A stretch of DNA of 64,000 nucleotides from NCBI GenBank assembly GCA_023213395.1, contig CM041465.1, positions 141,987,741-142,051,740 of the forward strand, written 5' to 3'. Shown in pieces: positions 650 to 57,512 of this stretch. How positions within the stretch are numbered: the first letter of the stretch is position 1; each line of letters opens with the position of its first letter. The DNA comes from Cycas panzhihuaensis (taxonomy: Eukaryota > Plantae > Cycadophyta). The notes under the pieces were generated by a model, which worked only from the letters and a program-made list of their open reading frames with translations, had not been told where the DNA came from and ran no database searches. A program made the translations under genes and the position numbers.

Positions 650-1012
650 TATTGAGGTTAATGTCCCTTACTTAACTCCCACCTTAAGAACATATGAGTG
701 CACACACCCTCATGGTAAGTTAAGGTGAGATTATTTTATTATACATTGTTATTATTTTAATGTTAAGTCATTACTTTATATTACTTTAAATTTGGAGGTT
801 GAGGAGGATTCCCTCCTCCCTCCCAAGTATATATTTTATGGGGTTCAAAGCCTTGGTATTCTTCAACACCACCTTCATCAAAGGAATTTATATGTATTAT
901 CTTTAAAGATGTTTTAATACAATGATGTTTACAATGTATACTATTAATATGGCTTGAATGTTACTTTGATTTGTATGTTCATATACTCTGCTTTATTCTC
1001 CATACTCTAATA
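650..1012 (+). repeat. Element A 5' LTR
   Basis: Direct repeat of 11578-11940. Termini have decayed to TA...TA. Followed by the PBS. Confidence 0.92.
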
Positions 1013-1921
1013 TGGTATAAGAGCATATTGTTCTTGGGCCTCCAACATTATCTTGGCAACCTTTGTGTTGATCTTAGAAACATTTATGAAATAACATCAA
1101 GACCTTGGCTACATTTGGCTTCATTACTTAGCATCAAAGCAATAGATCTTGGTTACATTTTTATTTGTAGATTTTGGACTACATCTAAGGCTAGATCTTG
1201 GTTGAGTTCATGATAGGTTTATTTTAGCATTGATATTTTATTTAACTAATTATATTTTACATTAAAACATTATACTTTTGATATATTTTTATTTTGCATA
1301 ATATAACTATGCATATAGTCTTTGTGCAACCTATGTGCTCCTTTGTTTTGACTCTTTCTATAGTTTACTTACTCTTCACTAGTTATTTAATTCTCTATAA
1401 GGCCTTTGTGTAGCATCCAGTGGTCTAACATTCTCCTCAAATGATTATACTACCTTTGCATATCCTTCCATAGTGCTTCATCCTCCATGTATGACTGTGT
1501 AGCCTCCTACACCCCTATGTGGTATTCTATGGACCCTGCATCCCCCATGGAATCTTCTTTGGCCCCTGTGTGGCCTCTTATAGATCTTACATCTCATCTT
1601 GAGCCCTCTTGTCTATGTTTGACTCTCTATTAGGGCTACATCCTCTGCATGATGCCCTACATATTTGTGTCTCTCCCTCTATCTGGTCTCTCTTACCCAT
1701 TGTCATCCTGACCCTTGTGTAGTCTTTGTCATCATTCCTGATGGCTCTGTGGATCTCATCTGTAAGCATGGCATCCTCATTCCCTGAGAAAGTGTAAGCA
1801 TAAGCTATAGTAAGCATAGATCACCACCACTGTTTATATTTTTTTAATCTTTTTTTATTCATTAAAAAAAAAAAACATCCTTTTTTAAAGTTAGATCTCT
1901 ACGTCCCCCCCCCCTCCCCCC

Positions 1922-2305
1922 CGTGAAAATAATAAGATCTAAATATGTATACCCTAATTCAAGTATAATGAGCAAAATATTAATAAATATTCAACAAAAC
2001 AAGCAAATAAGTAACAAATATGAGCATGTAAAGGTACATGTGAATTCACCACATTGTAGGCTCTCTGTCGGGCAGAGCTTCTGCATTAACCAGAATCCAA
2101 TGTAAAGTACAAAGGTGTAGAGCAATATTTATAGCCATTAACCAAGATTACAAGGCATTGGGATAGGTAAATTTAATGGCACAAGAGGTGGACTTGACCT
2201 CACTATCCAATGTGATTTAATTACTTAAAAGGGTCCTTTTGTATAATATATATATTAGCATATAAATGTGTGAAGAAATAAAGGAGATATTAGAAAGTTT
2301 TAACA
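1922..2305 (-). repeat. Element B 3' LTR
   Basis: Direct repeat of 8537-8909 with a short indel near 2000; adjacent to the PPT. Confidence 0.93.
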
Positions 2306-2315
2306 CCCTCCCTTA

Positions 2316-5300
2316 ATAGCAACTTCATTTCTTCAGATATCAAGGTCAAATCTAAACCATTTCAACTTCAGTTTATCAAGTGCTTTAGTGAAGATGTCTG
2401 CAACCAGATCTTCAATAGGATGGTAAACGAGATCAACTTCTCCATTTTAGACATGCTCACAGATGAAGTAATGATGGAACTTAATGTGCTTGGTTCTAGC
2501 ATGGAATACATGATTCTTGATCATCTTCAACACACTTTGATTATCATAGTATAAGATGGTTGGTGAAGTCTACTAAAGTCCAAGCTTAATGAGAATCCTT
2601 TTGATCTAAAGTAACTCGGTTGTAGTATGGATAACTACTTTATATTCTACTTCAATGGAGGAAAGGGCAAACGTAGGTTACTTTTTATAGCTTTACGAGA
2701 TTACAACTGAGTTCATATCAAAACAATAGCCTAAAGTTGAATGACATGTATCTTGGAAACCAGCCCAATCAACATCTATATGTCCCTTTAGAGTAGGTGA
2801 TTCAATCTTATTATATTCAAGGACAAACTGATGAGTGCCATGAATATATTTAAGGATCCTGGTGACTGCTTTCTAATGATATGCTTTGGGCTGTGACATA
2901 TACCTAGAGCAGATCCATATTGCATATGATATGTTTGGGCAAATGTGAGTGGGATAAATAAGACTCCTAACTAACTATTGATACAAAGTGAGATCAAAAG
3001 GTTTTCCTTATTCATCTAGGTTTAACTTGGTTGCTGTCTCTATAGGAATTAATGTAGGCTTGTATTCTGTCATCCTAAATCTTTCCAAAAGTTCATTGGC
3101 ATACTTGGTTTAAGTTAAGAGGATGTGTCTTGGTTCTTACCAAACTTTAATTCTAAGGAAGTAATGAAGTAAGCCAAGGTCAGCCATCTCAAAATTGCTC
3201 TTTAACTCTAATTAGAGCCAAGAAATTCCATCTGTATCATTACCAATGATAGTAAGATTGTCTACATATAGTACAATGATTATGATCAAGTCATCTCTAA
3301 CCTGAATATAGGGATTAAGGTATGAGGGTGAATGATTAAATCTATGCTAAGTGAGAAATGCATCTATATTTGCATACTAGGCACATGGTGCCTACTCGAG
3401 TCTATAAAGGGCTTTCTTGTGTCTACAAACTAAGTGTTCTTGTCCTATAACAACATAGCTTGGGGGTTGTTTCAAGAAAACCTATTCTTTGAGCTATATA
3501 TTAAGGAAAACACTCTTCACATCCATTTGGTAGATAGACCATCCAAATTGGGCTGCTAGGGACATAACCAAATGGAATGTAGTCATGTTGGCTACCGGTG
3601 TAAAGGTCTCATCATAGTCAATTCCTTCTTGTTGTTTAAAACCTCTTGCAACAAGGTAAGCTTTGTGATGCTCTATTGTACCATATGTATAAAACTTTAT
3701 ATTGTATAGCCATATATAGTCAATTGCTTTCTTCCTAGGTGGTAATTTAGTTAGCTCCCAAATGTCATTTTTTAAGATGGAATTCATCTCTTCATCTATA
3801 GTTGCTTTCTACATTTGGTCTTTAACTGCCTCCTCATACATGAAAGGCTCAGGAGTTTCGAAAACACATGCCATGAGGGAAAAATTTATAGAGTGTCTCA
3901 TCTTGGAAGACCTCTTTGTAGTTGTGGGAGGAGGAGGAGAAATCTTTAAAAGTTGTTATACCTATTTAGGAGGTGGCTAAAAGCTAGTGGCTTCCACCTA
4001 AAGGTCATTAATTCCAATGTGAGGTAAATTTATACTTACTTGAGTTGATGACAAAGAAGTTGTTAGAACTAATGATGGACCAGGAGTGTAGGAATAAGTT
4101 GGTATAGGTGGCTCCAAAGTTTTTCCAAGGGACACTTGTGTCACACCAACTTCATCTTCTACTACAATCTGACGTGAAGGAGGTGTCAATACCTATGGTC
4201 GTTTTACAAAGATTACATCCCGTGTCATGTAAGCTTGGTTACCAACCATGTCAAAGACTCTATAGGCTTTGCAACTAGGTACATAGCCAAGGAAGATACA
4301 CTTAAATCTCTTATCATCAAGTTTCTTCCTATTATCCTTTAGGATATATTTGTATGGCATGCATCTAAAGATCCTTAAGTGAGCTATAGATGGTTTCTAA
4401 CCTGACCAAGCTTCTTCAGGAGTAAGGTTCCTAATTACAATTGTAGGACTTATGTTGGTTAGGTAAGCAGCTATGGCAATGGCATCAATCCAAAATCTAG
4501 TGGCAAGGTTGGCCACACTAAGCATGGCTTTCCTTTTGTTGATCAAAGTCTGATTCATCATTTCAGTTACATCATTCTGTTGAGGTGTGTGAGGAGTAGA
4601 AAATTGACATTAGATGCCATGTTCTTTGCAAAAGTTATTGAAATGATTTAAAATATACTCAACACCATTATCAGATCTAAGGGTCTTGACTCTCATCCCA
4701 CTTTCATTTTCATTAGTAGATTTGAACTTTTTAAATTTGTCTAGGCTTGATATTTATTTCTCAAGAAGTAGACCCATACTTTTATTGAGAAGTCATCTAT
4801 GAAGATAACGAAATACCAACTACCATTGAGAGATTGGGTGGATATAGTGTTACAAATATTAGAATGTACTAACTCTAATGGTTGTGAAGCTCTCCAATTA
4901 TTCTTGGAAGGGAATTTTTCTTTTTGTTGCTTTCCCTTTAGGCATGCCTCACATATATTCTGATATCTCTTAATTTTGGGTAGGTCATAAATCATTTTGA
5001 CCCTAGACATGAGATTCAAGCTTTGCATATTCAAATGACCTAGGCATTGATGCCATAGGTGGTCTTTGGATCTATTTGTGGTCACTTCATCTTTTGAGTG
5101 GGAGAATTCTCCTAGTTAATATATGCAAAGGGACTCTTTACATTGAGTTGTGTTAGCCATTGAGAAGGATTCATGTTGAGGAGTAGTGATAAGAGCGACT
5201 CAATCTAGCCAGTATAAGCCACCATCTTCATGTACTATAGCCACAAGTTTGCCTATAACATGGTCTATAATTTTTCAAATGTTATATCTAAAGAGGACAT

Positions 5301-6934
5301 CTATGTTATGCTTATCCATTTGACTAGAAGAAAGCAGGTTCATGTTCATATCAAGTACAAGGAACACATTACTGACGTGGTGTATAATGTTAGAGTCCTT
5401 CAATGTGACTGGTGCCCTACCAATTTTGGTCACATTATAAGTTATGTTGTCCCTAAATGTGACCATTTGAGTGTTGATTGGTTGGGTCTCTTCCAACATT
5501 TTTTCAGAACCTGTCATGTGTCTTATCAAGCTGAGAGGATAATGTTATAAAAAATAGGTTATGGGAGGAGGAGTCTTGACTATCTTCCATATTACCATCT
5601 TGTTGTTGATTATATTGTTGGTTCCTTTAATTCCTATTTGATAACTATTGCCTATTTTGAGCTCTTTTACCTTGTGTGAGCCTTAGATACCAATTCTGCT
5701 TATAGAATTGGCCTTAAGGTTGATATGATGGCCCCTATTATGGGGAGAAATGGCCTCATTATTGAACTAGACCACCATGTTGACAATAAGGGCCTCCTTA
5801 TTATGGAAAGGGGGCTCCTTGAGGAGGGCATGATCCTCCTTATTGATAAAAAGCTCCTTATCTTTGTTGATTATAACTAGGGCCTCCTTGATGGTATGAA
5901 GGTGCTCCTTATTGATAGATGGTGGGTGGTTGTTGATAGACTGGCCCATATGCTTGGATCCCTTAGTTTTTCAAGAGTTGTAAATTAGCTTGTCTTTTCC
6001 TACATTCAACACCTAGGTATCCAAATTTTCCATAGTAGAGATAGGTTACATTTTATTTACCTTGCTCATTCTTTTGAAACTTTCCTTATAGTTGATGCTA
6101 TAATTATTAAAGTTGCTGATTTATATAGGAGGAGGAGGAGGTGCCAACAAGATGCTACTGAGATGGATATTGATGTAACTATTGTGATATACAGAGAGAG
6201 TCCAAGAGTTGAACTAGGTCTTATTGTTGACTAAGCTATTAGGTTGCTCTATTAACAGTATTATCCTTTTCCAAGTTTCAGGTTGTAAAGGTAGGAGCTA
6301 AGTCAGATGTCGATGTTACCCCTAGTTGATTGAGAATATTTTCCTCTCGAAGCAAGAGCCCCTTAAAGGTTATGAAGTCTATCTTAGAGTAGTTATCATG
6401 TAACTTAGAGACAAATGAGTTGTATTTAATAGGTAAAATATTTATAATGCTTGAGATTAGATCATGGTCAGAAGGTGGCTCACCAAGGATAGTTAATTGG
6501 TTTCTAATGGTTTTGACTTCAATCAAATGATTTGTAATGTTTCTAGCAAAATGCATGGTAAATAGGTAAGACTTAAGGGTAAGAGACCTAGATTCATCCT
6601 TCCTCTCATAGAGTGAATAAAGTATGGTCTAAGCTTCATTTAAGCATTATGTTATTTTAATGTTTTGATCCACTTGGTCTTCAACCGCCAAGTGGAGGAA
6701 GGATAATGGTATGTTATCCTTAGCTTTAAAGTTGGCTAAGGTTATAAGATTAGGTGGAATAGTTTTAATGGGATCATTAGGATCTTGGGTGGGCTTAGGC
6801 ATAGGTATGTCCCCATTGATGTAGGCTAAATATTTATTCATGATAAGCAAGCTTTTGACTTGCTTTTTCTAAGATATAAAATTATTAATGCCATGGAGTT
6901 TGATGTTATTGGAAAGAAGCATTTATAATGCCAT
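2316..6934 (-). pseudogene. Element B gag-pol (gag, protease, GAG-pre-integrase, integrase, RT, RNase H) with many stops
   Basis: ORF fragments 6647-6850 and 6278-6556 (gag), 5275-5529 (protease, RHMTG), 4741-5085 (WHQCLGH...CEAC...LELVHS...FIDDFS), 3494-3787 (RT, LVARGFKQQEGIDYDETF...QMDVKSVFLN). RNase H tail RTKHIK...VADIFTKAL near 2390-2500. Integrase-before-RT order is copia. Confidence 0.95.
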
Positions 6935-8536
6935 GTTTAAAAGGTTTTTTGCATTTGATGTTTTTAAAGTTTTTTTTTTATGTGATGAGGTACTAATCTA
7001 CCTAAATGGATTCTAATATAAGATTCTAAGGTAACATGTCTCTAGGAAAGTTCCCGGTTACTATCTTGTCTAATGGTACCTTCCCATAAGTGGTAACTAG
7101 GGAGTCAATATACTAGTACGTGAGTTGAAGGGCTTGATATACCTTAACACATGGGCTACTAAGAAGGTCCTAAGACCCCCTTGATTTATTTTCCCACCTT
7201 CATCAGTTTTATGTCAAATGACAGATCTAATAATGAGAAATTACTAACCAAGGCACTCACCCCCTAGGTCTAGCCTCATCTCTAAACTCTAAAAGATAGG
7301 GCCTCCTCCTTAGCCTTCCACCTATTACACCTTATAGCCAATGATGTTCCTTATCTAATATGAGTAGGCCAAGGGCATGTGCATGGTGGTAACTTTAGGG
7401 GTCTTAACCATTCCTCTTATAAGGCTAGAAATGAGGGTTCAATTTGGGAGTTATCTTTTTTAATGTGAAAATTTTAGTTTTTTGAAGTGAGTTTCTTACA
7501 CAAAAGAGGTTCTTTTTTAAATAATAAATGAAATGAAAAGGAAATAAAGTAAATTAGAATGACAAGGGTAGGTTTAGAATGTTCTTGATGGGCTAATATT
7601 TGAGAGTTAACTTCTTCAACCTTCTAAGAGTAACACCTACATATGAAACATCACCAAGTACTTATTAGCCTTAAAAATTAGAATTCAATAGCTAAAAATG
7701 ATAAGCCACAACCTAATCTAGCAAAAGAACCTCAAGAAAACTAAAAACTACCTTCAAATATTAAAAAATAAAGCTCAAATAACTTGAATATAAAGGTAAA
7801 ATTGAGTAGCAATTATCTCTCTCAAATCAACTCCAAATCTAGTTAAATTTGATTTTAAACTATAGATCTCTGAATTAGATTTTCAATGCTTTAAACAGTT
7901 TATAAATTAGATAAAAGATTGTAGATATATCACAGAAATAACACAAACACCTTTTTTGAAGTTTATGTGACCTACGCACAAAAATGACAAACTAAAGCAG
8001 GAATGCAGAATTCTAACAAAGGATCAAATAGACTTGGAATAAGATGAAATTTTAGGAAAATAGACATAATGATGATAGGTATCCAGTAGAATTAGAAATT
8101 TTGAGAAAGAAGCTTGTATTGAGGAGAATAAATCTGTGGAAGTCTAGGGTTCTTTATAGACCATATAATGAAGAATAAAGCCAAAAATAACCACAAAAAT
8201 CTAGAAAACTCCTCTATTAGGCATTAGAAATGGGTGTGAGGCTACTACAAAACCTAGTGATGCTCCAACAAGTAAAAATCATGAGTAATATAGTTGCAAT
8301 AAGCAAACAATATGATTTTTCACATGTTTTTTAACAAAACTAAGTAAAACCCTAAATGGATACAAACAAGCTTCAAAATCTACTGTGGGAGGCTAAACTC
8401 TCTCACAACTAGCTGTGTATGAGCTCTAACACAACATACAACCTTAGGTTTACTAAAGAAAATAAAGGAAATAGAGTAAAATCAACTGAAATTAGCAAAA
8501 TACTTTTAAATTAAGCATATACAAGCTTTGATACCA

Positions 8537-8909
8537 TGTGAGAATAATAGGATCTAAATATGTGTACCCTGATTCAAGTATAATGAGCAAAATATTGATA
8601 AATATTCAACAAAACAAACAAATATGAGTATGCAAAGGTACAAGTGAATTCACCACACCGTAAGCTCTCTCTCGGGCAGAGCTTCCACATTAATCAGAAT
8701 CTAATATGAAGTACAAATGTGCAGGATAATACTTATAGCCATCTTCTAAGATTACAAGATATTAGGATATGCCAACTTAACATCACAAGAGGTGGACCTG
8801 ACCTCACTATCCAATGTGATTTAATTACATAAAAGGGTCCTTTTATGTAATATATACATTAGCATATAAAGGTGTGAAGAAATGAAGGAGATATTAGAAA
8901 GTTTTAACA
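8537..8909 (-). repeat. Element B 5' LTR
   Basis: TG...CA termini; adjacent to the PBS at 8525-8536. Confidence 0.93.
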
Positions 8910-9393
8910 CCCCCTCCGTGGATCTATGGATATATTTTGATCTAATTTTTGATAAAAAATCAGAGAAATCTCACATATTTTTCTAGCAAATTCTTGATTC
9001 ATTCTTTGCCTATTATCATTCAAGCATATTCATTAAAAAAACTTTATTTTTTCAAGGTTTATTAAAAATTTAATTAGATTTAATTCTGGTTTCAAATTTA
9101 AACATGTGCCTTTGCTCTAACCCTCCTTTCAAATTTATCCCCCAGTCATATTCAACCTTATATGATTGTGCTTTTTACCCTTTAGGGGCAGAACTCAAAA
9201 AAATATAAGTTACTTTGTATATGTTTTATTTTTTCAAAAATCATTTTCTATATTCTATATAATTTGGAATTTGGAGCATCCTTGGGCCTCCAGTAGTCAA
9301 TTTTGTGGGACTCCACATGACTAAAGGGCTTATTAGCTAAGGGGCTAAAAGCCAACCTCATTTTTTTTTTTTTGACTTAAGGGTACTATTCAC

Positions 9394-9527
9394 ATTTTAC
9401 ATAATATCTTTGCACTGGGAGGTCAGATTCTTAAACTACTTAATTTGTTGGACTCTTGAATTAATTTTACATAATATCTTTACACTGGGAGGTCAGATTC
9501 TTAAACTGCTTAATTTGTTGGACTCTT
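9394..9527. repeat. Tandem duplication, 70-bp period, two copies, inside element A
   Basis: TTTTACATAATATCTTT(G/A)CACTGGGAGGTCAGATTCTTAAACT(A/G)CTTAATTTGTTGGACTCTT occurs twice. Confidence 0.9.
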
Positions 9528-10871
9528 AACTGATCTAGTCAAAGTTGACCATATTTTATACCTCTTAATTCATTAGCCGTAAAAGGGTCCTTATACAATT
9601 TCTCTAATAACTTGGGTTCTTTAGCTCCGTTTTTCAAATCATCAGAACTATTAGAAAGAATTTTTAGCATTCTACGTGTCATAATACGTTTCATTGCATT
9701 CTAGTTTTGTTTTATAAATCTTTAAAGGCATTGAATTTGAGCATCTATTTTAGTCTTAATTAGACACATTCTTTGACACTTTGAGCTAAATTTCTCATTC
9801 TAACTAAATATATTTGATCATTATCTACATACTAATTGATTATTGATAATATTTACTTAGTTTTATAAGCTTACAAGTTATTTTTTAGCTCTTTAGTATC
9901 TATTTTGTCTTATTAAGGATTAGGAGCCCTATTTAAATCAAAATGATAAATTGGTACTCATTACAATTACTATTCTCTTTATTTAACATTTACATTTGAA
10001 TTTAAAATGATTTATTTAAGTATTTTTACCTATTTAAGGCCTGTTATCACTTCTAAAACTTTAATATTGTACCTAATTTGCATATAAATTTATAAAAGAT
10101 CATCTCTTTATTTTATCTACATTGTTTCAAGAAAAATTACTAGAAATTCTATATATCTTAAGGTTGTTGGTTCACTAATTAAAGAAGCATTCTTATTTGT
10201 CTTAAAGCCACTATATTTTTGAAGATTAATAAGTGTATTTTAGTGCATAGTCATAAGCCATTTATAGTTCCTTTAGGCTTTTGAGGTTCATCTCATATTA
10301 AGCATTTCATTATATTTACATTTATGCTTCATAGTTCATCTCTTTAAAGCCTCATATATTTGACATTACTTGAAGAGACTTTAAGTTGAACATTGATCAT
10401 TATTTCAAAGTCTAGTGCTTTGTATTTGAATATTGAAAGTTTTATACTTTTGGCTCATAATTTTAGTTCCTTATTAATTCATTTGAATCTTATGGTAAAT
10501 GTGCATTTAGTTTCATTTTAACAAAGGTTGTTTATATTATTTTTTAAGGAGCACACATTCATGACTATTTGCATGTTGTCTTTGATTTGAAAGGCTCATT
10601 TGATGGTTATTTACTCTTAATAAGATTTTGAAATTAAAGGATCAATTTTACTTATTTTCAAAAAGTATTTCAAAGTTGCATTTGGTTATTTGAAGACACA
10701 TTAGCCTATTTTGAAGTCTTATAAAAATTACTTTGTAAATAGCATTCATTAAATCTAATTTGAAAGGATTATTTATCATTTATTTGTCTCATTGTTTAAG
10801 GAGATATGCCTCTTTTTTGTTGCTCATTTCAAGATTGATTTATCATTAAAGGTTATGATTTATTGGTTACA

Positions 10872-11561
10872 ATGATACTAAATGAAGATAACTTAAGCTT
10901 TCCCATATTTGATGAGACTAACTTTTACATTTAGAAATATATTTTAGAAACCCATCTCATTGCAAATAATTTATGACATTATATAAGTGATGGTTATATT
11001 GAGAATGGACCTAATTTTAGAGAAAACTTGAAAAATGATAATGAAGTCTTAGCTCTAATATTTTCTACACTAAATGATGATGTATTCACTAGTGTTGATG
11101 GTTTAACCACATCAAAACTAGTTTGGTATTCCCTAGACTCATTTTATGAGGGAAAATGTTTATATTTAAATAAATTAGACTATATTAATGATGTATTTTT
11201 TGTGAGATAAATGATAGATTAGGTGTTTGTTGATGGAAAGTCTAATGTTACATATAATATTAAAGATTACATTGAGACTAATGATCATATTGTTACATTT
11301 GAGACTATATATACATTTGATCTAATTAACTTTTCTCAAAAGGACAAAGTTAAAGTTGAAGATAATTCTATTCATTTGAAGCAAGTTATATCTATACTTG
11401 AACCATATTTTATTAAAGACCATATGAAAAGGATAATGATGCAAGCTATAGACCATTTCAAAGATGATGAAGCCAAAGGACATATGTACAATCACCTTGT
11501 CAAAGTATACCTAAAGTACTTATACCACACATTCAAAGAGAAACTAAAGAAGAAGCGATAA
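10872..11561 (+). pseudogene. Element A mini-ORF: copia Gag N-terminus plus a short Pol-like tail
   Basis: One frame with four internal stops: MILNEDNLSFPIFDETNFYI*KYILETHLIANNL*HYISDG...NEVLALIFSTLNDDVFTSVDGLTTSKLVW...YHTFKEKLKKKR. The N-terminus matches copia Gag (F.G.N+..W...M...L...LW; A+.LI...L.D.VF..+....T+K..W). Confidence 0.8.
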
Positions 11562-11577
11562 ACATTAAGGAGGAGAA

Positions 11578-11940
11578 TGTTGGGGTTAATGTCCCTCATT
11601 TAACTCCCACCTTAAGAACATGTGAGTACGCACATCCTCATGGTTAGTTAAGGTGAGATTATTTTATTATGTATTGTTATTATTTTAATGTTAAGTCATT
11701 ACTTTATATTATTTTGAATTTGGAGGTTGAGGAAGATTCCCTCTTCCCTCATGAGTATATATTTTATAGGTTTCAAAACCTTGGTGTTCTTCAATACCAC
11801 CTTCATCAAAGGAATTTGTATGTACTCTCTTTAAAGATGACTTAATACAATGATTTTTATAATGTGTACTATTAATATGGCTTGAATGTTACTTTAATTT
11901 GTATGTTTACTTACTCCACTCTATTCTTCATACTCTAACA
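11578..11940 (+). repeat. Element A 3' LTR
   Basis: TGTTG...TAACA, preceded by the PPT and followed by TSD AGTAT. Confidence 0.93.
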
Positions 11941-17515: not shown

Positions 17516-17798
17516 GCCTTAGTATTCTTGAATTAATTCTTCTATCCAAGCTAAAATTATTATCAAAATGGCCTATAAGGATATATCTTCCTTCATGATA
17601 TTATCCTTAGGTATTTAGGATAATGCAATTGTAATGATATTTTCCTTTTCATTTTTATAAATAATACTGAAATTAAATATTTAAACTTTACTTCCCCATT
17701 TCTGTTGCTCATTGGATAATGTCTTTTAGTTTAAAAAGTATTTTAAACTTTTATGATAAATTTTGACCACAAATTTACTTTTGAATAAGTATTGATAC
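17516..17798 (-). pseudogene. G1 RNase H C-terminal fragment
   Basis: Translates YQYLFKSKFVVKIYHKSLKYFLN*KTLSNEQQKWGSKV*IFNFSIIYKNEKENIITIALS, matching gypsy W..YL.G..F.V.TDH.SLK+...KG.EN.VADALS. Continuous with KMLVIMHTIHQW at 23816 once C is removed. Confidence 0.85.
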
Positions 17799-18242
17799 TA
17801 TTGGAGTGTAATGTCATCACTCAACTCCCTCTTACCTACCAGGCTTGTGCACCTCAATTTAGACATGTGATACTCAACATGTCAAGGTAAGTTAAGATAA
17901 GTTGAATTAGTTTCATTTGAGTTAAGTGAATATTATTTTATTGTTATTTTGAATTCAGGGGTTGAGGAGTCTCCCTCCTCCCCCAAAACTATTTATATTG
18001 TGGGGTGTACAACCTTGGTGTTTTTAGACACCGCCTTCTTTGAGGAGAATTGTAATGTTCATTTCTGCTACAATGGATTGAACAATAAGGCTTTCATGTG
18101 TTTATGCTATGGTGATACATTGATACATTGATGCAATATTGGTTTATACTTATTTGATATATATTCTACCCTGTTCTCCTGCTATTATTAATTCCTTCAT
18201 TTGGTATCAGAGCATAGTTTTACAAGAATATATTTTCCTTTA
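17799..18242 (+). repeat. Element C 5' LTR (includes PBS copy 1)
   Basis: Direct repeat of 23377-23810. Confidence 0.93.
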
Positions 18243-18345
18243 TTTGGTATCAGAGCATAGTTTTGCAAGAAAATATTTTCCTTCATTTGGTATCAGAGCA
18301 TAGTCCTGCTATTATATTTTCCTTCATTTGGTATCAGAGCAGGTG
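18192..18345 (+). repeat. Tandem array of LTR-end (TTCCTTCA) + tRNA-iMet PBS units, 4 copies
   Basis: TGGTATCAGAGC at 18202-18213, 18245-18256, 18288-18299 and 18329-18340 (periods 43, 43, 41), each preceded by TTCCTT(C/T)A-TT. Confidence 0.97.
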
Positions 18346-19914
18346 ATTACTGATCTGTGAAGATTTGTGCAAATCTACGCAGGATTTTTAGCAGCAAGTT
18401 ATATATATTCAAGTTTTATTCTCATATTCAAGTTATTTTCTCTTCAGATTTACAGATTTATCATATATTTTGATAGTTTACAAGTTTTTTTGTCTACTTA
18501 TTTGATATTTTTTGAAGATTTACAAAAGAGCATCAGCTGAATACAAAAGTTATCAAGTTTTCTTCAAAGATCTGTAATTTGTTACTTCAAATCTGCTATT
18601 TTTACTATAGATCTGTTATACTTAGATTTGTGCAGATTCATAAAAGTATTTTTGCATCTATAAGCTGTATTTCAATCTACAAAAGATAGCAGTTGCATAT
18701 CTGTAACTTTTGGGGTATTTTCAGCCATCTGAAGCTTTTCAAGCCTGTTTTTTCTACTGCAAATTAATTGTTTATCAGATCTACAGTATTTGAGGCATAT
18801 TCAGCCTTTTGAAGAAGATATACACAAGATCAAGACAGCTACATCTGCGTATTCCAGGTTCTTCTGTTCCATTTTTAAATTTACACATATTTTATATATC
18901 TGCTCAATATATTCCTTTAAAAATTTTTCAAATACAAATATATAAGCATTTTTATGATATATTTTCTTCAAAATATTTAAAAATTTATTGATATTGTGAC
19001 TCGGTTATATGAGTATATTGCTCCATTAAGTTATTTTACTGTTATTATTTGAAGAAATTTTTGTAAAATCTCTGTGCATATATAAATAATTGCCCTTTTT
19101 CAATTGATTTTAGAATAGATTTGTCCATATTTATACTTAAAACAAATTAAAGAATTTGTAGAAATTATAAGTGAGTATAATCTTCATTTTTTTGTAAGAA
19201 TACCACATAGAATCTTCCCCGTGATTGGGTAAGTTACTCAGATAAAACCCTCTATCATACAGATTCTTTGTCATCCATTGAATCTACCTTGTATGTACTT
19301 ATTTTTGAAGCACTTGGCTACATTATTCAAACAAAGTTGAACTTTGAAAGATTAGGAAAACCTAGCCATTCTTCTATCTTCCATTGGCAGTTGTGTGGCT
19401 GTTGGTGCTACTACCAGGGAGTGCCACATTCTAGATCTGTGGTCTATGTGATCTAGTTTTCTTATGTCCCTGTGCACTTGTAGTGTGTTGTTTCCAACAC
19501 CTCTGTGCTGACTTAATCTCAGCATATATATACAACCATTTGTTTACAAACTGTGCATCATCTTACAAACTATTGTGAGCATATAGCAATTTGTTTACAA
19601 ACTGTTATGAGCCATTTGTGTCTGCGTTTAAGTGCTGGCCCCCGCTCTGTCCACCTCTGAAACCGGCGTCTCCTACCGTATAGACTCGTAATCATTGTTC
19701 GCCTGCATACTTGCGTCTTCGTCTCGCACGTTTGCACACTTGCGTCATTACTGTTGTTTGGAGTTTTACTGCCCGGTTTTCGTCTTCATTATTTGCGTCT
19801 GCCTTGCCATTCACTAAGGCTCATTAGCTCTGCGCGTTGATACATTCACTATTTGTTGTTTGCCACCCTTGCCATTCACTAATTACATTTGGCAGCTAAT
19901 GTTATCATTATCTA

Positions 19915-20175
19915 TGCGTTCGGCGTTCAACGCGCAGCATACTTGGACTCGACTTCGGTCTCATTAACTTTGTTATATATTGTTCGTCATTATTTCTATT
20001 GTTTACCTTCGACTGCGTTTGGTGTTTGGCGCGTAACATACTCAGACTCGGCTTTGGTCTCATTAACTTTGTTATATATTGTTTGTCATTATTTCTATTA
20101 TTTGCCTTCGACTACGTTGTTTATTGTTGTTCATTGATCGGTTGCTTTGTTTATTGTTGTTCATTAATCAGTTGT
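19915..20175. repeat. Internal tandem duplications in C (~100-bp unit twice, then ~30-bp unit twice)
   Basis: TGCGTT...GACTCG(A/G)CTT(C/T)GGTCTCATTAACTTTGTTATATATTG...CCTTCGACT is repeated, followed by two copies of TTGTTTATTGTTGTTCATT. Confidence 0.85.
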
Positions 20176-20614
20176 CAATTTTCATGCATCTCATCTCATT
20201 AATCGGTGCGTGCATCATCATTATTTGATTAAGGCTCAGCTTATCGGCCTAAACATTTTTCGCCCTGACATTTTTTTTGGATCTCTAATATATTGGTTGG
20301 CCCTGGCGTTTGACATTTTTTCTGCTCCTCATTCTAATAAATATACTAGTCGTATTTTATTATTTTATTATATATCCTTTGCGTTCATTATTTGATTATT
20401 ATTCTTGCCTGCAATTAGTGTGCGCTAGACTCAGACTCGGTATTGTTCCGCAGCTAAGGCCGCCGTGTGCTTGCTCATTTATTGCAGTCCTGCGTTTAGC
20501 ACCTCTTTATTGCCATTTCTAGTTATACATCCTGTTCAGCTATTCTTCAGGCTAATCATTGTACTCGGTCATTGTATATCTCTATTTAGTCATTATATAG
20601 ATTCATTCTAAGGT

Positions 20615-20617
<3 letters not shown>

Positions 20618-20664
<47 letters not shown>
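20618..20664. repeat. (TA)n microsatellite
   Basis: Uninterrupted TA run. Confidence 0.98.
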
Positions 20665-20667
<3 letters not shown>

Positions 20668-22619
20668 CATCTTTTAAATATTAACTTGACTCATACGTCT
20701 GGTCTTTTAAAATTTAGTATTCATTTTGCCTCGCTGCGTCATGCCCCGTCATCTCTGGCCCATGCTTTATACCTATTCCGTTGCATTCTTCCACGTATTT
20801 ACGTTAGTATATATTGCCGTTTCCGTACAGCTATCTATCGGGGCGCTGCCTTCTTGTTTGTGCTATTATTTTACTCGGTCTACACTTTGCATTCAGCTAA
20901 TGCTTAATACATATTCGTCCCATTTGTACGGCCGGTCCTACCCGTTCCGTCCTCTGTACCCTCTCCTAATCGGTGCGCAGTACATTTCATTGTTGGCTGC
21001 TACGGCTTATATATCCCGTTTCATTCAGGTTTTGTCATTATTTGGTGTCTACATTTTGCATCTGTCGTTTGCGTCTTTTATTTGCATTTAAAAAAAAAAT
21101 CTACAGACATCTCATTTTGTATACATTCACTTTATAAGGTTTAAAAATTAAAGTTAATTAAATAACTTTTTGAGATCCAAGTTTGAACCTTTTATAAAGT
21201 TTTTTTGTGTTTTAAAATTTGACAAGCGAGTTCACCCTCTTGGCATCGGAGGTATTTATCTTCTGATTGATCTTGGGTTCAATCTTGGCTCAGTCTATCT
21301 TTAGGCTCATATTCTAATAAGTTTTTTTATAATATAATCTTTTTAACCTTTATTTTTTTTAAATTTTTATTTTTTATAGAGTTATTGGTGTTTTGTTACC
21401 ATAACTTCTCACTGGCTTATCGGTTTCAGACAAAACCTACTCCAATAGATCAAAACTTTTTTGTACACCAATTTCGACTGGTCATATGACCAATTTGGTG
21501 CCAATTTGACCCTGTTTCGACCATTTTAACATTAAACTTTCAAAATTTCAGCATTTTTTACACTTTTAACAAAATCATTTTTAGAACTGGCTATCATTTA
21601 TTACTGGTAAACTTCTTTTTGCCTAAATTTCCTCTATAACAATCTACATTTTATAGACTTTAATACTTACTTCTTACTTCAATTTTTTAAATTCATTTTC
21701 ATTAGTATTTTAATAGCTGAAATTAGGAATTTAGTTATTTTTAGCCTGTTTCTTAACATTCTACATAAAGACACATGTTACCTTTTTTACTATAACTTTC
21801 TCATTTTATACTAGATTTCAATTCCGTTAGTTTTGTTGGGAAGTTGATTCATTTCTCTTCATTTTGACATATTTTTCTATATATTTTGACATATTTTTCC
21901 TATTTTTCATATCATTCAAATTTGAGGTACCTTATTGCCTTAAATCTGCTGTTTTTACATTATTTTTCAAAAAATTTCAATTGAAAGTGCATTGAACAAT
22001 CTCATAAACAATATTTGTTCCTTTTTTCAACATTTTCTAAAAGTTAATTAGTAATTTTATGCAATTTTGACTACCCTACTCCTGTCAAGCCCCATAAGAA
22101 GGTCTATACCTTTGCATCATTCAAATCGTGATTTATTGGTACCCATTTTTAAAACCGTTAGTTTCATTGGATTCACACCTTATTAATCTACAGATTGGTA
22201 GAATTTTAAGTTATTATGATATTATTTAGTTTAGTTTTTAAGCTATTAAATTTGAGCACACAAGTACATCCTAATAAGCTTATCTTTTTTCAAAATTTTT
22301 AAGAAAATTCTAGTTTATATCTCATTGGTTACTCAAGGTTTCTACTTGACCTTTCTACAAGTATTTTAAGCTATTTTGAACTAGCATTTGTTCATAAGGC
22401 AATATATATTTTTCTTAAAGAAAAGTTATTTTTATACAAAAAGGGAAAGTGTTTCTTACATTGAAGATTTACATTTACTCATTTGAGAAATTGGTATTTT
22501 TGAAAACTCTTTATATTTCATTATCAAAATTTTATTTCAGTTTTGCATAAGTGAAAAAGATTTTTTAAGTTTACTTTCAAATGCATCATTATTTTCTTAT
22601 TGATTACATTACTTTCAAA

Positions 22620-23468
22620 ATGGCACAATTCTCCATTTTTGATGGCCATAACTTTTCACTATGGTATGACACCATACAAACTTACTTCATTAAACATGAT
22701 CTTTTAAAGTATTTACAACATGAATGTGACCTTAGCATTAAAGAAAATTTTAGAAAATATAATGAAGTTTTAGGTTTATTATTTTGCACTATGACTAATG
22801 ATGTTTTTTCACTGGTTTCTGAATTAACAACATCTAAGCCTATTTGGGATTTATTAATTTCCATTTATGGGGGAGATACCCCCAATGTATTTGATGAAAT
22901 TTTTGATGAGCATATGAGATAGGTAACAGAACAGATAGATCATGACGACAACAACCATGGGGATTCAGATCAAATGTAGGACCACCTTGTTGGACAAGGA
23001 TTTGATCCTCCATTTGAGGGGGAGAATGAAGATGAACCTTATGATATGATGAAGAATGAATATGATGATATGACAAAGAATGAACCTGATGATATGACAA
23101 CTATTCAAAGCATAAAGATTACAAAAGTTCAAGTTCAAAGCCTTCTTAATGTTCCAGTTGATAAAGTCCAAATTACAGTTATTCATCTACATTTGCATCA
23201 AGTTTCATCTACTTATAGTTTTCCTACATCATTCTATGATAAAGAGACATATGTGACTATAAGGATGAGAAGAGTTGATAAAGATCAAGATCAGCATTTC
23301 AAAGTTTTTTTTAAGTACAAGTTTCACAAGTTCAAAGAAAAGATACAAGTGTTCGCGATGACATTAAGGGGGAGAATATTGGAGTGTAATGTCATCACTC
23401 AACTCCCTCTTACCTACCAGGCTTGTGCACCTCAATTTAGACATGTGATGCTCAACATGTCAAGGTAA
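22620..23468 (+). pseudogene. Element C mini-ORF: copia Gag N-terminus, acidic linker and Pol-like tail, reading through the PPT into the 3' LTR
   Basis: ORFs 22581-22922 and 23046-23468 are in one frame separated only by two TAG codons. MAQFSIFDGHNFSLWYDTIQTYF...NEVLGLLFCTMTNDVFSLVSELTTSKPIWDLL is copia Gag. The tail reads KFHKFKEKIQVFAMTLRGR. Confidence 0.85.
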
Positions 23469-23810
23469 GTTAAGTTAGTTTCATTTGAGTTAAGTGAATA
23501 TTATTTTATTGTTATTTTGAATTTAGGGGTTGAGGAGTTTCCCTCCTCCCCCAAAACTATTTATATTGTGGGGTGTACAACCCTGGTGTTTTTAGACACC
23601 GCCTTCTTTGAGGAGATTTGTAATACTCATTTCTGCTATAATGGATTGAACAATAATGCTTTCATGTGTTTATGTTATGGTGATACATTGATACATTGAT
23701 GAAATATTGGTTTATACTTATTTGATATATGTTCTGCCCTGTTCTCCTACTATTATTGATTCCTTCATTTGGTATCAGAGCATAGTTTTGCAAGAATATA
23801 TTTTCCTTCA
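23377..23810 (+). repeat. Element C 3' LTR, containing an internal PBS at 23770-23781
   Basis: Ends TTTTCCTTCA, immediately followed by TSD GATAC. Confidence 0.95.
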
Positions 23811-23815
23811 GATAC

Positions 23816-27304: not shown

Positions 27305-29272
27305 TAAAAGCATGAAGTACATCCTTGTTGGGTACTTTGAGAAAAATAAAACATACAAAGTATATGAGTTTTTAACTTGAAAAGTTCACACAACTTATGA
27401 TGTAATCTTTTATAAATATGAGACTTAGAATATTAATGTTAAAGATTAGGTTGAAGAGTTTCTTAAATGCAGTTCTTTATGTAGCATTGTCTAACTAGAA
27501 TACGAGTCATTTAATATTAGTGAAGTAATAGAATTAGAATCCTTTCAATTTCTAAAAGTTGATTTTGAGTAGAAGCTTAAGATAGAGTCAAAGATGAAGC
27601 TTGGGCCAAAGCCACAAAAACTATTTTATGCTTGACCTTTATCTTTGAAGAAGAAGTTTTTAAAATGCTATTTAAAAATTATGGAGGATGCTGAAAAATA
27701 TTACTTGATTCTAAGGGAAAGTGAAAATTAAAAAATCCAAACCTTTGAACATATAAATATTGGAAAAATTAATATGAAGCTTTGATACCATGTTGGAAAA
27801 ATAGTATGCTATGAATACAAAAGATGAGATTATGTGGTGTGTGAATAATAAAACAATGAAGCACAATTTAATATAAGAGGTGGAAGAATAGCCAAACCTC
27901 AAATTAGAATGAAGAATAATATGCATACTTATAGTATAACTCACCACTTGTGATAGAACCCTCATTGGTCAATGTTGGAGGTGACACACATCTCTATATG
28001 GCTTAGGATAATTATAGAATTAGGTATTACACCCAATATTTTTTCCTTGTAATATATAATTACATAAATAAAATATCACATCAAAGATAAGTGTTGAATC
28101 TTTAAATGAATACTAGAACATAAGCTACTATAAGGATATAATCTGCTATTGATATCCATATGAAGAGAACACCATCTATCAGACCATATGGATAACTAAT
28201 TGTTACGACCACCAATTTACTAGGATGTTTCTTTATATACATTATTCAATCAATGCCAAGTCAACTTTATTCTAGGAACACACCATCCTATGTGACTGAA
28301 TAAGTAAACTAATGAAGAAATGCACAAGAGTAGATGAAGAGGGTTCCTATCTCTTAGTTATATAGGATAATATAAGTAACTTCTTTAGCTATAATGGCTA
28401 GAAATACATGGATCTAAGGCCTTACAATGGCACTATGGCCTTAAATTACCTCTGTGGGCTAAAATCATGCTATTATAAACTTATATCATGCCTCCAAATG
28501 CTAAAATACCAGTAATAAATGCTAATACATGATTAAAAAATGGATGTGACTAAAATACAATAAGAATAACTCTCTCAATAATAAATTTCAATGTGAAATG
28601 GGTTCTCTAGAGCCCAAAATGAGCCTTTATACAAGTTATCTCCCCCATTTGGGATACATTATCAATGAAATATATAATAAATGATATGGAATCTTAAAAA
28701 ATATATGTATGTGCCTAAAAATGCTAAAAAAAAAAGACAAATAAAGTTAAAAAGAAATTGACTTTGAGCTAAAATTTCTACATCAAATTAGCTCCAAATG
28801 TTATTAAGTGACCTGTCAAATGAAAGTGTTATTAGGTACAAACCCAACGCAACTAATGAGACTGAAAATAGAGTCTATATACTTAAGTTACAACCAAAAC
28901 AATGATGAAGACTCCAAGAAAACTAAAAATTTAAGGCTTATGCCCTTTCATCTACTAGTTGAGGTCACATGGGTGCTCAATATGACCAAGGGCTAATGGA
29001 CTAGGGGGCTAGGAAAAACTCAAACATTACCAAATGTAATTAAATTCATTTTTTCAAATATAAAATAATTTATGTTGATTTCATAAAAAATCACATTCGC
29101 CCAAAGGAAAAAAAATATATGCCAAAAATTAAAACTTAAATCTTTGATTAAAGAATAAAAATACCCTAAATCAAAATTAGGGTTTATCCATTTTTACATC
29201 TCTACATAAAATTTCTTCTTATGTTGCTATTTTTCTTCTCTGTTAAATATTTTTTGGGCCACCATTATTTTT

Positions 29273-30406: not shown

Positions 30407-31593
30407 AAAACTTTTTTCCCTTTCTTTCCCTTAAAAAATAATATATATAGTGTTTTTAATAATCTCCAAAAGATAAAATAGAACAGTTCTTTTGCATATA
30501 ATTTGAGATGTAGATTCATGGCTACATATATTTTTTTCTTTTTTTATTTATGTTTTACTATAGAAATAATACAGAAAGGTTATATATTTGAAGACATCCT
30601 CACCAAATTACTCAACTCTAAATTTTTTTAAATGTGGAGTTATTTCTAGCCTTTGGATAGCAAGAAAGGACTCTCTAAACTACTTTCAGCAACTCCATTA
30701 TAATCTACCCACTAGCATAAAAGGAGATTATTATAACAACTATATATGCTCAAAAAGAAATCTCCTCCTTGTTGATAGCAAACATGTTGTTCTGTAGGGT
30801 GATCAAGACTGCATGAGTAGTTAGTCTGCTTATTTTTCCTCTATGAATAGTAGCTTTAAAAATTCTTCAACATAGCACATTTTGCCTCTAAAATCTGCCA
30901 TTTTTGTCTTTCTTAGCTTTAAACAACTTCAAAAATATGCTTCAAAACAACCTTGAAACAACTTTAAAAAATAGACTTTTAATGGCTTTTAATAGCCTCT
31001 TAATAATATAAAAAATAACTCCTTGAAATGACAAAATGTAGTGATAAAATAGCCTCAAATGTATCTCAAAATATAATGAAAATAGTCTAAAAAATATGTA
31101 TAAAAATACAATATTAAATGCCTTCAAATATCTTAAAATAATCCTTTAAATGGATAAGGAATAAGTCACTAATCAAGCATAAAATAGATTCTTAAAAATA
31201 ACTTTATACCTCTTTAAAAATTTACAAAAAAATAGGCTCTAAAATAATGCCCTCAAGGATTCAAACCTTAGGCTCTGATACCATGTTGGAAAAATTAATA
31301 TAAAGCTTTAATACCATGTTAAAAGAATAATATGCTATGAATACAAAAGATGAAATTATATGGTGAGTCAATGATAAAATAATAAAGCACAAGAATAATA
31401 AAGTATGTACAAGTTAATATAAGAGATGGAAGAATGGGCAAATCTCAAATTAGAATGAAGAATGATGTACATACTTATAATACAACTCACCACCTATGAC
31501 AGAACCCTCATTAGTTAATGTTGGAGGTGACACATATTTCTATGTAGCTCACAATCTCAAATATAAAATACAAATAAATGTAGAGAGAGTATT

Positions 31594-53076: not shown

Positions 53077-56000
53077 TATTAGAATATGTGATTTATCACA
53101 TATGTAATATTTAATATTAGTGAGATGACACATTTATAATCCCACCATTCACACACATTAAGATATGTGAGATACACACATATCCAAGATTATGCTACTA
53201 GATGATGTAAAGGCTCAAGGGACACTATAGGCTACTCATGAGGTGAATATCAATATAAATATATACACACCATTTGAGAACTTGAGAAAGGTCAAAGACC
53301 TAGAGATATAATTATTCTAATCATTAAGAGGAGCTCTTAACTGCACCTTCTTATGCAGCTTTTCCCACATTGGGTTTTCGATGTATAAATCTATTATTAA
53401 TTTATGTTGATTCTTTACATGCATGCATTACTCATGAGTTAATTCTACCATTATACTTACATCTTATATTCTATTATGTTATTCTATATTTCTCATATAG
53501 TATTAGAGTATAATTATATTTTTTAACATAGCATCAAAGTAATTTCTAACATGGTATTAGAGCCATGTTAGTTAAAAGATCTTATGTAATAGGAAGAAGC
53601 TTATTGAGTTAATATGATAATCTAAAATGAGGTAATAAAATAGAGCAAGTATATGAGCTAGTATAAGAGCTAAATATGAGGTGATTTTAATGAGCTAGAA
53701 GTTTAAATATACAAGTATTTTTTCAGTGACATGTGACCAAGTCCAAGGTCCAAATAAGTGATGAATGAGATGAAGATGGATCTACATATACAAGATGAAA
53801 TAGGTAAATTGATGGTATACTATGATATATTAATTTATTATGGATAATTTACACATGTTGGATCCATATACTAGTACATGTAGGCATTCAAGGTAGTCCA
53901 CCAAATATGATATTTCATTCATTAGTAAAGGCTTTTGTAAGTGTCTCACATCAGAGATTCATTACCATAATGAATTCAGTACTCCATCAGTGAGATAAAA
54001 ATAGGGAACAAGCTTGTATAGTATAAAAAGTAGTAAGTTGACAAGTATGAGATAGTTTTTTACAACAAATAGATAGGTATATAACATGAGATGTTTATGT
54101 GGCCATATTGTTGAATGGTATGAAATGAGAATATTATAGTGGCACATGATATTTATGATGGCTTAATAGTATTATAGTGGTAAAGTAATGAAAATAACAT
54201 ATATGAGGGCATTATTATTAAAGGGCATATGAATAAAAAGTAGATATTGTTTGATGATATATGAGCATGATACATGCATATTCTAGTTAAGGTTTTAAAA
54301 ATGTGTTATTATATGTACATGATGAATAAAGTTTATGCATGAGGAGGATTATGTATGCATGTGAAAATCTTTAATCTATGATATTCAAAATAAGCTCCTC
54401 TTTATATTTCACATACATTTGCTCCTCCATTATGTCTCCCACAGAATCTAATATCTCTAAGGAATCTAGTTGTACATTATGTATGGAGCCTATGCAAATC
54501 TAGTCCTAAAGGACACAAAGGATTAAACTAATTTTGTAGTCACCCATCATTAGGATCAATGAAAAACTCCAATCTTAACTTACTCTAATGTTCTAATATT
54601 TTGAATAAAATGTTAGTCCTAAAAGATTTTTTAAGTTCTAGAAGTTTTAGAAAAATGTTGGTTTCTTTATTTTTCGTTTAAAGAAAATGCATCTGATTCA
54701 ACTTGAAGGGGATAAGAAAGGACATAAGCATGCTACAAATTGTAATGGATTCTTATTGCTTGTATTTCCAATATTCCACCACTACTACCATGGATAAATC
54801 CACACCATTATATACAAAGATTGCCTATATCCACCAAACACATCAAAGAACATGCCCAAACTATATTCTTCCCTTTTGCCTTGGGGTATGCTACTCCTTG
54901 ATAATTGATTGGTCACATCATCATTTAGGTCGATAGGTGCTCAACCCTATGATAAAGAACATAGAACTTCCACTTGTTATCTATAAAATCCTACATGCAT
55001 GAAAAGTTATTTCTATGCAAAACCCTTACCATGCCAGAAATCAATCACCAACTATATGAAAGGAGGAAGATATACAGAGAAAATGCCATGACCCTATCAT
55101 CACATACATCCACAAAGAAGCAATTTGCATGCATACAATCCACAGATTGAATAATGGAGACTTAACAAGTATAGTTTAAAGATTTATATAAATAAATATT
55201 TTGAAAGGATCATTTAAATTCATAAAAAAAATTATAAGTGCGATTAAAATTTTAATTATTTTTTATATTTTTTAAAATCTAGATCAACCCTAAGATTTGT
55301 AAGTAGGAAGTCACATGGAGATCTTATGTGATCAAGGGCTAAGGTTTAATATAGGTGGACTTCAAAATGATTAAACTAAATTAGATTTTTTTATTCTATA
55401 AAAATTACATATGAAATTTGATTATTTTTTAAAGTCTATAACTAATTTATTAAGGATCACACATTTTAAGGATAAATGGTACTTTTTTTAGTATAACTTC
55501 TCACTGGTATATTAGATTCAAGTGGAATTAGTTGTGTTGGGAAGAAAACTTCGAGATGGTCAAAATGAGTATTGCATAACATATTTTAGATTATAGAAGA
55601 CAAAGAAAATAAATAGTAAATTTAATAAAAGTACTTAAAACCTCACAAAAATTACATTCTATAACCATTTAAAAAAAGTATATTTTCATGTTTTCAAAGG
55701 TTTCAAATATGATGGTAAAGTTATTTTTATTAATGAAGCAAGAAAAGGAAAGTTTCATTTAAAAGCGATCATTTTAAAGCTCATTAATGATATTTGAAGA
55801 CTCAAAATTAATTGAAAAAAATATGAAATGGGAAGCATTTTATGAATTTATGATTTTAAAATTTATACACATTTGAATATACACATTTGGTTTAGCGAAG
55901 AGCTCCACTATTTAAATGATAAAGATCATCTAGTTTTTGAATATTTTTTTATGAATGATAATTACATCTATTTGATCATTGATGACACCATCTAGTATTT

Positions 56001-57512
56001 AATTAACGTACCCAGTTTGATCATTGATGGAGAGTTAAGGAGAGATTAAGTATTCCACCTATTAATGAGACAAGGAGAAGTCTTAAGTGATTATTTAATT
56101 AGAATACCAAATTAGTTATCGATATGATCTAGCTAATAATCAATTGTTTAGGTAGTCTAGCTAAAAGATGAAAGAAGAAAGTATTTTTTAGTGAGAAATT
56201 TGACTAACCATGTATGGCAAGAGATACAGAAGCATATTATTAATGCTTCTTTGTTACATCTAACTTGTCTTAGCTAAGTAGTTTAGCTTATTCCTAGAGT
56301 TAGTTATTTTTGAGATGATAAGTTAATGAAATGATTAATGGATGCTAAAGGAAAGCTATTAAAGTGTGCAAATAAGGAATCTTATTCATAAGAAACAAGT
56401 ATAGGTTTTGCAAGTTAATCTTGTATAACACACTTGATTATGTTGTTCTAACTCCTATGTAAGAGGTATGATTATGCTACTCTTATACAAGCAATTTAAA
56501 AGCTAATGAACTATGCATTTGAAATAATTACCTAGAGAACTAGTGATTATAGAGGCTAGTCACCCATATATTTTGATAGATAGTTATTATTTTGTATGGA
56601 CTAAAAAATCACCTTATTTGTTTATTTATTTGATAATTAATTGGCAAAATAATGATTAAAAGTAACTATATAAATGAAGATATAAAGATATTCAAGAAAT
56701 TACTTCATATATGTTGATGTTAATGTTGATGTTGAGGGTTGATATTTATAGGTTGGTTGTTTACTATTAGTTACTAAGGTGTACAAATAAATATATATAT
56801 GTTTTTATAAGTTTATACACAGGTATACAAATTAATACTTGTAGGGAATAAGTTAATGGATGATATAATAAATAAATATAATATATAGATATTGATATAT
56901 ATTATAGGATATAGCATATAGGATAAAGACAAAGGGATGAATACTTGAAGACATGAAGATAAAGGCTAAGATGTAAAGACATTAAATATTAAGGGGGAAT
57001 GCTGGAATATGTAATTTATCACAATATAATATTTAATATTAGTGAGATGACATATATATAATCCCATCATTCATATACATTAAGATATATGAGATGCACA
57101 CATATCCAATATTATGCTATTTGATAATATAAACTCTCAAGAAAAAAATATAGGCTACTCATGAGATAAATATCAATATAAATATGTATACACACTACTT
57201 GAAAACTTAAGAAAGGTCAAAGACTTAGAGATATAATTATTCTAATCATTAACAGGAGCTCTGAACTCCATCTTCTCCTATGATTTTTTTGACATTAAGT
57301 CTTCTACATATAAATCTATTATCTCTCTTATAATAAATGCTTGTAATGTTATTTGCTTTATGTTTGTGTTGATTCTTTATATGTGCACATTACTCATGAA
57401 TTAATTCTACCATTATACTTGCATCATATATTCTACTATGTTACTCTATATTTCTTATATGGTATTAGAGTGTAATTATACTTTCTATATAGTATCAAAG
57501 AAATTTCTAATA
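53077..57512 (+). mobile_element. Element H: non-autonomous LARD-like LTR element with PBS relics inside its LTRs
   Basis: LTRs 53077-53551 and 57000-57512. TSD AGAGT/AGATT (4/5). PBS TGGTATTAGAGCC 53552-53564. PPT AAGGGGGAA 56991-56999. No recognisable gag or pol in the 3.4-kb interior. Confidence 0.88.

Follow-up and report, generated by a model that had tools for sequence, protein, structure and literature searches.

Four tandem modules of LTR terminus and primer-binding site straddle the LTR border of a non-autonomous copia-type element in Cycas panzhihuaensis

Primer-binding sites in described elements

In copia families such as Jatropha Jc1-Jc7, the standard arrangement is a long terminal repeat (LTR) followed by 2 nt and the primer-binding site (PBS) TGGTATCAGAGC, together with a polypurine tract (PPT) of the GGGGGAGA type (PMC3852365). 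The element described here, element C, is located in a 64-kb stretch of Cycas panzhihuaensis DNA, the whole of which is referred to as the window, and is like these families in its LTR end, the 2 nt, the tRNA-Met-complementary TGGTATCAGAGC, the GGGGGAGA-type PPT and a 5-bp target-site duplication (TSD). The Jatropha families have one PBS, whereas in element C the junction is present fourfold, with one of the repeats inside the LTR and with no pol (PMC3852365).

Other natural departures from a single, simple PBS have been reported. HIV-1 MAL-type isolates carry a partial PBS duplication that, as in element C, is natural, heritable and located beside the PBS, but it consists of one extra copy, holds no complete module of terminus and PBS, and is not reported as an alternative start (PMC3185550). 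Ty3 and Drosophila gypsy have a bipartite or second PBS, the second segment that binds the tRNA being located at the opposite end, and thus, like element C, offer the tRNA several binding segments on their genomic RNA; these segments, however, pair with different parts of the tRNA at opposite RNA ends, are not tandem, and leave the LTR border unmoved (PMC1635307). Among non-autonomous elements, the LARD, TRIM and TR-GAG types resemble element C in having LTRs, PBS, PPT and TSD without pol, and in their frequent internal rearrangement. Unlike element C, they are presented without tandem PBS arrays in those passages of a 2026 sugar beet survey of non-autonomous elements that deal with PBS types and tandem whole-element arrangements (PMC13570524).

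The array of element C may be regarded, by analogy, as a natural counterpart of engineered two-PBS retroviral vectors. In work by Voronin and Pathak from 2004, such vectors reportedly make use of both sites, and the sequence between the sites ends up in the LTR. Both systems have at least two sites for the same tRNA on one RNA, with downstream priming placing the inter-site sequence in both LTRs; the vectors are artificial and hold a reporter between the sites, whereas element C is natural and has four sites, each with its own LTR terminus. The type of LTR retrotransposon and the logic of its priming are already known, and the novelty lies in a natural multi-module form by which the LTR border would be moved. 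No description of natural tandem arrays of terminus and PBS was found in the open full-text literature, which is weak evidence given how noisy the abbreviation 'PBS' is.

Element C and its array of primer-binding sites

Element C covers positions 17799-23810 (~6 kb) and is flanked on both sides by a perfect 5-bp target duplication, GATAC (Table 1). Self-BLAST paired its LTRs (17799-18240 and 23377-23808) at 94.1% identity, and a global alignment gave 17 mismatches in 434 positions and one 10-bp indel, for a K2P distance of 0.0405. With 1.3e-8 substitutions per site per year, a rate in common use for rice, this LTR divergence of 4% corresponds to an age of roughly 1.5 million years; an earlier note on this DNA, made from the letters alone, had called the element young. 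Both LTRs start with TA and not with the canonical TG, which is present at the homologous position in one LTR of the sister element A; the 3' end is CA in the 3' LTR and TA in the 5' LTR. The first PBS past the 5' LTR end follows it by 2 nt.

Together, the LTRs, PBS and PPT enclose an interior of ~5.1 kb without domains, an organization that is LARD-like. The interior of element C holds no ORF of at least 130 aa, and in 14 ORF pieces of the element there was no Pfam domain save a sub-threshold trace of the Gag N-terminus. Pol is absent, with no integrase or reverse transcriptase domain in any of these pieces. Element C also falls short of a TR-GAG, having only a 117-aa open piece (22.2 bits against a cut-off of 27 bits) and no complete gag ORF. 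It is a non-autonomous derivative of a Ty1/copia-type LTR retrotransposon, where assignment to the copia superfamily is suggested, at the level of sequence, by the Gag N-terminal trace, the type of PBS and the 5-bp TSD. Seven other arrays, with periods from 17 to 99, were reported in the element by Tandem Repeats Finder (TRF). Tandem duplications in the interior are seen at 18405-18619, 19931-20174 and 23032-23100, with periods of 19, 20, 99, 30 and 24 bp, and a (TA)23 run occupies 20618-20664.

The window is 69% A+T, contains no ORF of at least 250 aa, just one of at least 130 aa, no tRNA gene and no Rfam family, and yielded at least eight LTR pairs in self-comparison; it is a graveyard of mostly non-coding LTR elements.

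Table 1. Features of element C and of the LTR-like copies of element E (positions in the window)
Feature	Position	Strand	Evidence
Left target-site duplication GATAC	17794-17798	.	Direct reading; identical to 23811-23815
5' LTR, 444 nt; starts TATTGG, ends on the second 8-mer copy, mutated to TTCCTTTA	17799-18242	+	Self-BLAST, global alignment
U5 segment re-used in spacer 3 (18304-18315)	18177-18188	+	Exact 12-nt repeat
Tandem array of 'LTR terminus + TT + PBS + ATAG + spacer' units	18192-18341	+	TRF, unit table
Array units	U1 18192-18234, U2 18235-18277, U3 18278-18318, U4 from 18319	+	Unit table
PBS copy 1, inside the LTR (U5)	18202-18213	+	Perfect 12-mer; 3' LTR counterpart 23770-23781
PBS copy 2, first PBS after the LTR end; well-supported primer site of the inserting cycle	18245-18256	+	Perfect 12-mer; 3' LTR ends on the 8-mer preceding copy 2
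PBS copy 3, leader	18288-18299	+	Perfect 12-mer
PBS copy 4, leader; sole copy followed by AGGT, not ATAG	18329-18340	+	Perfect 12-mer, direct reading
Internal region without coding capacity, with many other tandem duplications	18341-23365	+	ORF, Pfam, TRF
Remnant of a copia-type Gag N-terminus	22569-22919	+	PF14223 Retrotran_gag_2, 22.2 bits (cut-off 27 bits), E = 1e-4
Polypurine tract AAGGGGGAGAA, directly before the 3' LTR	23366-23376	+	Direct reading; PPT type as in the copia families of PMC3852365
3' LTR, 434 nt; one complete unit 23760-23802, ends on 8-mer TTCCTTCA (23803-23810)	23377-23810	+	
Right target-site duplication GATAC	23811-23815	.	Direct reading
Element E, LTR-like copies	27757-28003 and 31272-31549	minus	

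At the 5' LTR border, TRF reported one tandem array with a period of 43, 3.5 copies, 89% matches and a score of 237. The PBS 12-mer TGGTATCAGAGC, which is complementary to the 3' end of initiator tRNA-Met (tRNA-iMet), occurs in it four times without mismatch (first positions 18202, 18245, 18288 and 18329), all within 139 nt and at intervals of 41-43 nt. In each unit, this 12-mer is preceded by an 8-mer corresponding to the LTR terminus and by 2 nt, and each unit is thus a complete module in which a terminus with CA at its end is separated by 2 nt from a 12-nt PBS. In the whole 64-kb window, the 12-mer with at most one mismatch was matched 13 times, where 0.13 matches were expected; besides the copies in element C, position 31272 is the sole perfect site, and most of the other PBS sites of the window carry one mismatch. 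The 22-mer formed by 8-mer, TT and 12-mer was found at the four sites of the array, copy 2 with one mismatch, and at a fifth site at 23760, against an expectation of zero. The earlier description of a repeat occurring four times is therefore exact for the 12-mer but not for the 8-mer, which before PBS copy 2 reads TTCCTTTA, with one mismatch.

The three spacers are those quoted in the earlier note. Spacers 1 and 2 are near-duplicates that differ at 2 of 17 positions (S-type), while spacer 3, whose origin from U5 had been pointed out, starts with an exact copy of 12 nt of U5 and ends in the same ATT tail as the other two. The proposed start of the stretch at 18177 holds as the point where the U5 source of this spacer begins; the array proper begins at 18192, and 18177 lies in U5. 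These two spacer classes, a near-identical pair and one into which 12 nt of U5 were patched, bear out the claim that the array was built by at least two duplication events. An integrase-compatible end does stand 2 nt before each PBS, but its being 'preserved' is largely a matter of geometry, since any tandem duplication that spans the PBS and the 10 nt upstream of it necessarily copies the terminus. The comparison with a repeat-spacer array applies to the layout and to nothing beyond it: with two near-duplicate spacers and a third taken from the element's own U5, this is not a CRISPR-type array but a plain period-43 repeat in a retrotransposon.

The persistence of four intact 12-mers in a window where most PBS have decayed had been read as a hint of constraint. 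The pattern itself is present. At the LTR divergence of element C, 1.2 changes would be expected in the PBS copies and the probability of none is 0.30 under neutrality, so that constraint on the 12-mers was rejected as unproven; because the element is young, their intactness is no more than chance would give.

Copy 4 was also considered as a trace of longer tRNA complementarity on account of the AGGT that follows it, but this pairing needs a 1-nt gap and spans 4 nt, and we gave it no weight. The tRNA continues with GG before CUCUGAUACCA, as in strings of the miR1511 type, and strings of this type containing GGCUCUGAUACCA are common in the plant small-RNA literature. PBS arrays might be targets of small RNAs that match tRNA-iMet at its 3' end; the match of the units described here covers 12 nt only, after which they continue with A, not C.

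The LTR border and the primer site of the last cycle

The right LTR shows where the border lies. It runs past the first terminus 8-mer into TT, a perfect PBS (23770-23781), ATAG, an S-type spacer and a second 8-mer that extends to 23810; the GATAC target duplication follows directly, and homology to the left side ends exactly at the same 8-mer. Because the 3' LTR holds one full unit and then the 8-mer and the target duplication, the 5' LTR ends at 18242 and unit 1 belongs to U5. The array is thus not simply located downstream of an LTR that ends at 18199. It lies across the border of the LTR, with unit 1 inside U5 and copies 3 and 4 in the leader. The element carries four full PBS for one tRNA, and the unit with a PBS at 23760-23802 is represented in both LTRs.

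In LTR elements, minus-strand strong-stop DNA begins where the tRNA primes, and this position also fixes how far U5 extends outward in the two new LTRs. Since the 3' LTR contains exactly one module and ends on the terminus 8-mer followed by GATAC, the last cycle was primed at PBS copy 2. It is well supported that the inserting cycle started at this copy, on an RNA with another complete module upstream. The parent RNA would already have had three modules or more, and probably all four. The mutation in the 8-mer of copy 2 arose after insertion, because the 3' LTR still ends in CA where the 5' LTR ends in TA. In general terms, tRNA priming at module n would bring modules 1 to n-1 into both LTRs and leave module n+1 onward in the leader; whichever module binds the tRNA would set the U5 end, and each choice would yield an integration-competent end.

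Two further explanations were weighed. The right-hand repeat could belong to a tandem or recombined neighbor, as its 5' LTR with a stump of the leader, in which case the PBS at 23770 would be silent on priming. According to passages of the sugar beet survey (PMC13570524), non-autonomous plant elements often show LTR-internal-LTR units in tandem, and in element E of the same window the similarity does continue beyond both LTR-like copies. In element C, however, the PPT abuts the right-hand repeat, which ends precisely on the terminus 8-mer and is followed by the same 5 nt that precede the left LTR, a coincidence with a chance of about 1 in 1000; we therefore consider a neighbor's stump very unlikely. 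Tandem repeats are also error-prone in assemblies, and mis-expansion of a short one in the long-read assembly could imitate an array, although nothing specific to this locus points that way. The units are told apart by substitutions and by the different third spacer, and the 3' LTR holds an independent copy of the unit, which makes an assembly artefact extremely unlikely.

Embedded PBS-like sites in other elements of the window, and scans beyond it

Self-comparison of the 64-kb window revealed no second copy of the element C family. The sister element A (652-11938; TSD AGTAT) has an LTR that is related to that of element C and starts at the homologous position, and a single PBS (1013, one mismatch) directly after this LTR. 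A related LTR with a single PBS shows that the array of element C is a derived state. Element A is interrupted by a nested minus-strand element with LTRs at 1923-2308 and 8538-8912 and a PBS at 8525. A candidate fossil module in the leader of element A (1120-1145) was not significant, as 93 of 2000 shuffles scored as well and so did background windows.

Two further elements have PBS-like sequence embedded at LTR-like ends. In both copies of element E, a PBS-like 12-mer follows an AACA end (31305-31316 and 27779-27790) and the two share a G-to-A change at position 9; in the upper copy a perfect PBS comes after it (31272-31283). Similarity runs past both repeat ends, so the two E copies may be two members of a family and not one element. 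After the PBS of element E there is a stretch resembling further tRNA complementarity, AAGGTTTGAATCC. The LTRs of element H (53082-53549 and 57005-57510) each contain two decayed PBS-like 12-mers with mismatches common to both LTRs; each of these fossils follows an LTR-like ACA or ATA end and lies ahead of the PBS at 53552. At 53659, 107 nt downstream of that PBS, there is one more PBS-like site, with two mismatches. E and H are older, unrelated elements that have the same architecture in fossil form. The mismatches common to both LTRs imply that the embedded sites of E and H were already abandoned at insertion. Only the primer site actually used is rewritten from the tRNA in each cycle, and decay of embedded sites is therefore to be expected.

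These elements bear on whether the array of element C is a neutral minisatellite, in which slippage or unequal exchange, by reverse transcriptase or in the host, happened to span the PBS, so that one site is used and the extra copies are passengers. Seven other tandem duplications within the same 6-kb element are in line with this, as are the lack of excess conservation in the 12-mers and the embedded copies of the older elements E and H, which were mutated before insertion in the manner of abandoned sites that decay. On the other side, each LTR includes a unit, and terminus and TSD are clean, which means that the PBS that was used had a complete module upstream, and so a replicating RNA held two or more interchangeable modules; moreover, this type of module recurs in three unrelated elements within 64 kb. 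For these reasons, we regard purely passive repeats as a serious but unlikely rival, and favor modules that could each act as a primer site.

Beyond the window, a protein word search with the 113-aa ORF in public collections gave no candidate. A scan of metagenome contigs with the 22-mer recovered seven single-PBS loci, all of which belong to other copia families. At these loci (L001-L007), the junction TTCCTTYA + TT + PBS is found in unrelated copia families of other plants: L001, L003 and L007 are members of a first family and L004 and L006 of a second, and around the match L002 does not differ from L005. Scans of viral contigs found nothing. When genome contigs were scanned for two 12-mers at a spacing of 15-45 nt, three bacterial contigs matched. 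These matches, located in repeats that are GC-rich or unrelated, are coincidental and were discarded; here the PBS 12-mer falls in short tandem repeats of contigs from a Mycobacterium MAG, a Fibrobacterota MAG and Oligoflexus tunisiensis (L008-L010).

Growth of the array and consequences for LTR elements

Taken as a whole, the explanation that we consider likely is that the array is the junction of U5 end and primer binding of a Ty1/copia-type element, non-autonomous and about 1.5 million years old, reiterated four times, and that the LTR border of element C can move and is not fixed, as judged from one copy of the family. The most likely source of the duplications is template switching by reverse transcriptase.

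For the gain of units we propose a model, which is distinct from what was observed, based on out-of-register plus-strand transfer. Where RNase H digestion is incomplete, or on a co-packaged RNA, the minus strand would read past the used PBS into the upstream units. The terminal PBS of plus-strand strong-stop DNA could then pair with the complement of a PBS one unit too far upstream, and the product would gain one copy of the LTR-terminal unit, to which the new unit is predicted to be identical. Mis-pairing in the opposite direction would remove units. The first step, from one PBS to two, would need a non-homologous switch; the structure of spacer 3, a 12-nt U5 patch joined to the tail of an S-type spacer, implies that non-homologous switches did happen. 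Compared with the copy of U1 that the 3' LTR contains, U1 of the 5' LTR has a difference at 1 of 43 positions and U2 at 2 of 43, where 1.7 changes are expected from the LTR divergence. U1 and U2 are thus no more divergent than the two LTRs, a likeness that is consistent with the plus-strand transfer model. One of the four units could also be the result of later slippage after insertion.

A broader reading may be entertained, in which tandem modules of LTR terminus and PBS would be a recurrent, heritable device of copia-type elements, mostly non-autonomous ones, in this genome. Any module could prime, the LTR border would slide from cycle to cycle, and out-of-register plus-strand transfer would add units to arrays or take them away. 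Extra modules would confer a replication advantage, for example by offering more primer-loaded sites in competition for the enzymes of an autonomous partner, and abandoned modules would fossilize inside U5, as in E and H. Held jointly, these propositions seem to us quite improbable.

For annotation, the array serves as a warning, as software that sets the LTR end at the first PBS misplaces the border by at least one unit, here 43 nt. Additionally, the 3' LTR becomes readable as a record of which primer site was used, and element C provides a natural system for the study of primer-site choice, hitherto studied with engineered retroviral vectors. If the likely explanation given above is right, LTRs can lengthen by swallowing former primer sites, which gives a concrete origin for PBS-like motifs in U5, and the LTR border, usually taken as a fixed property of a family, can be chosen in each replication cycle.
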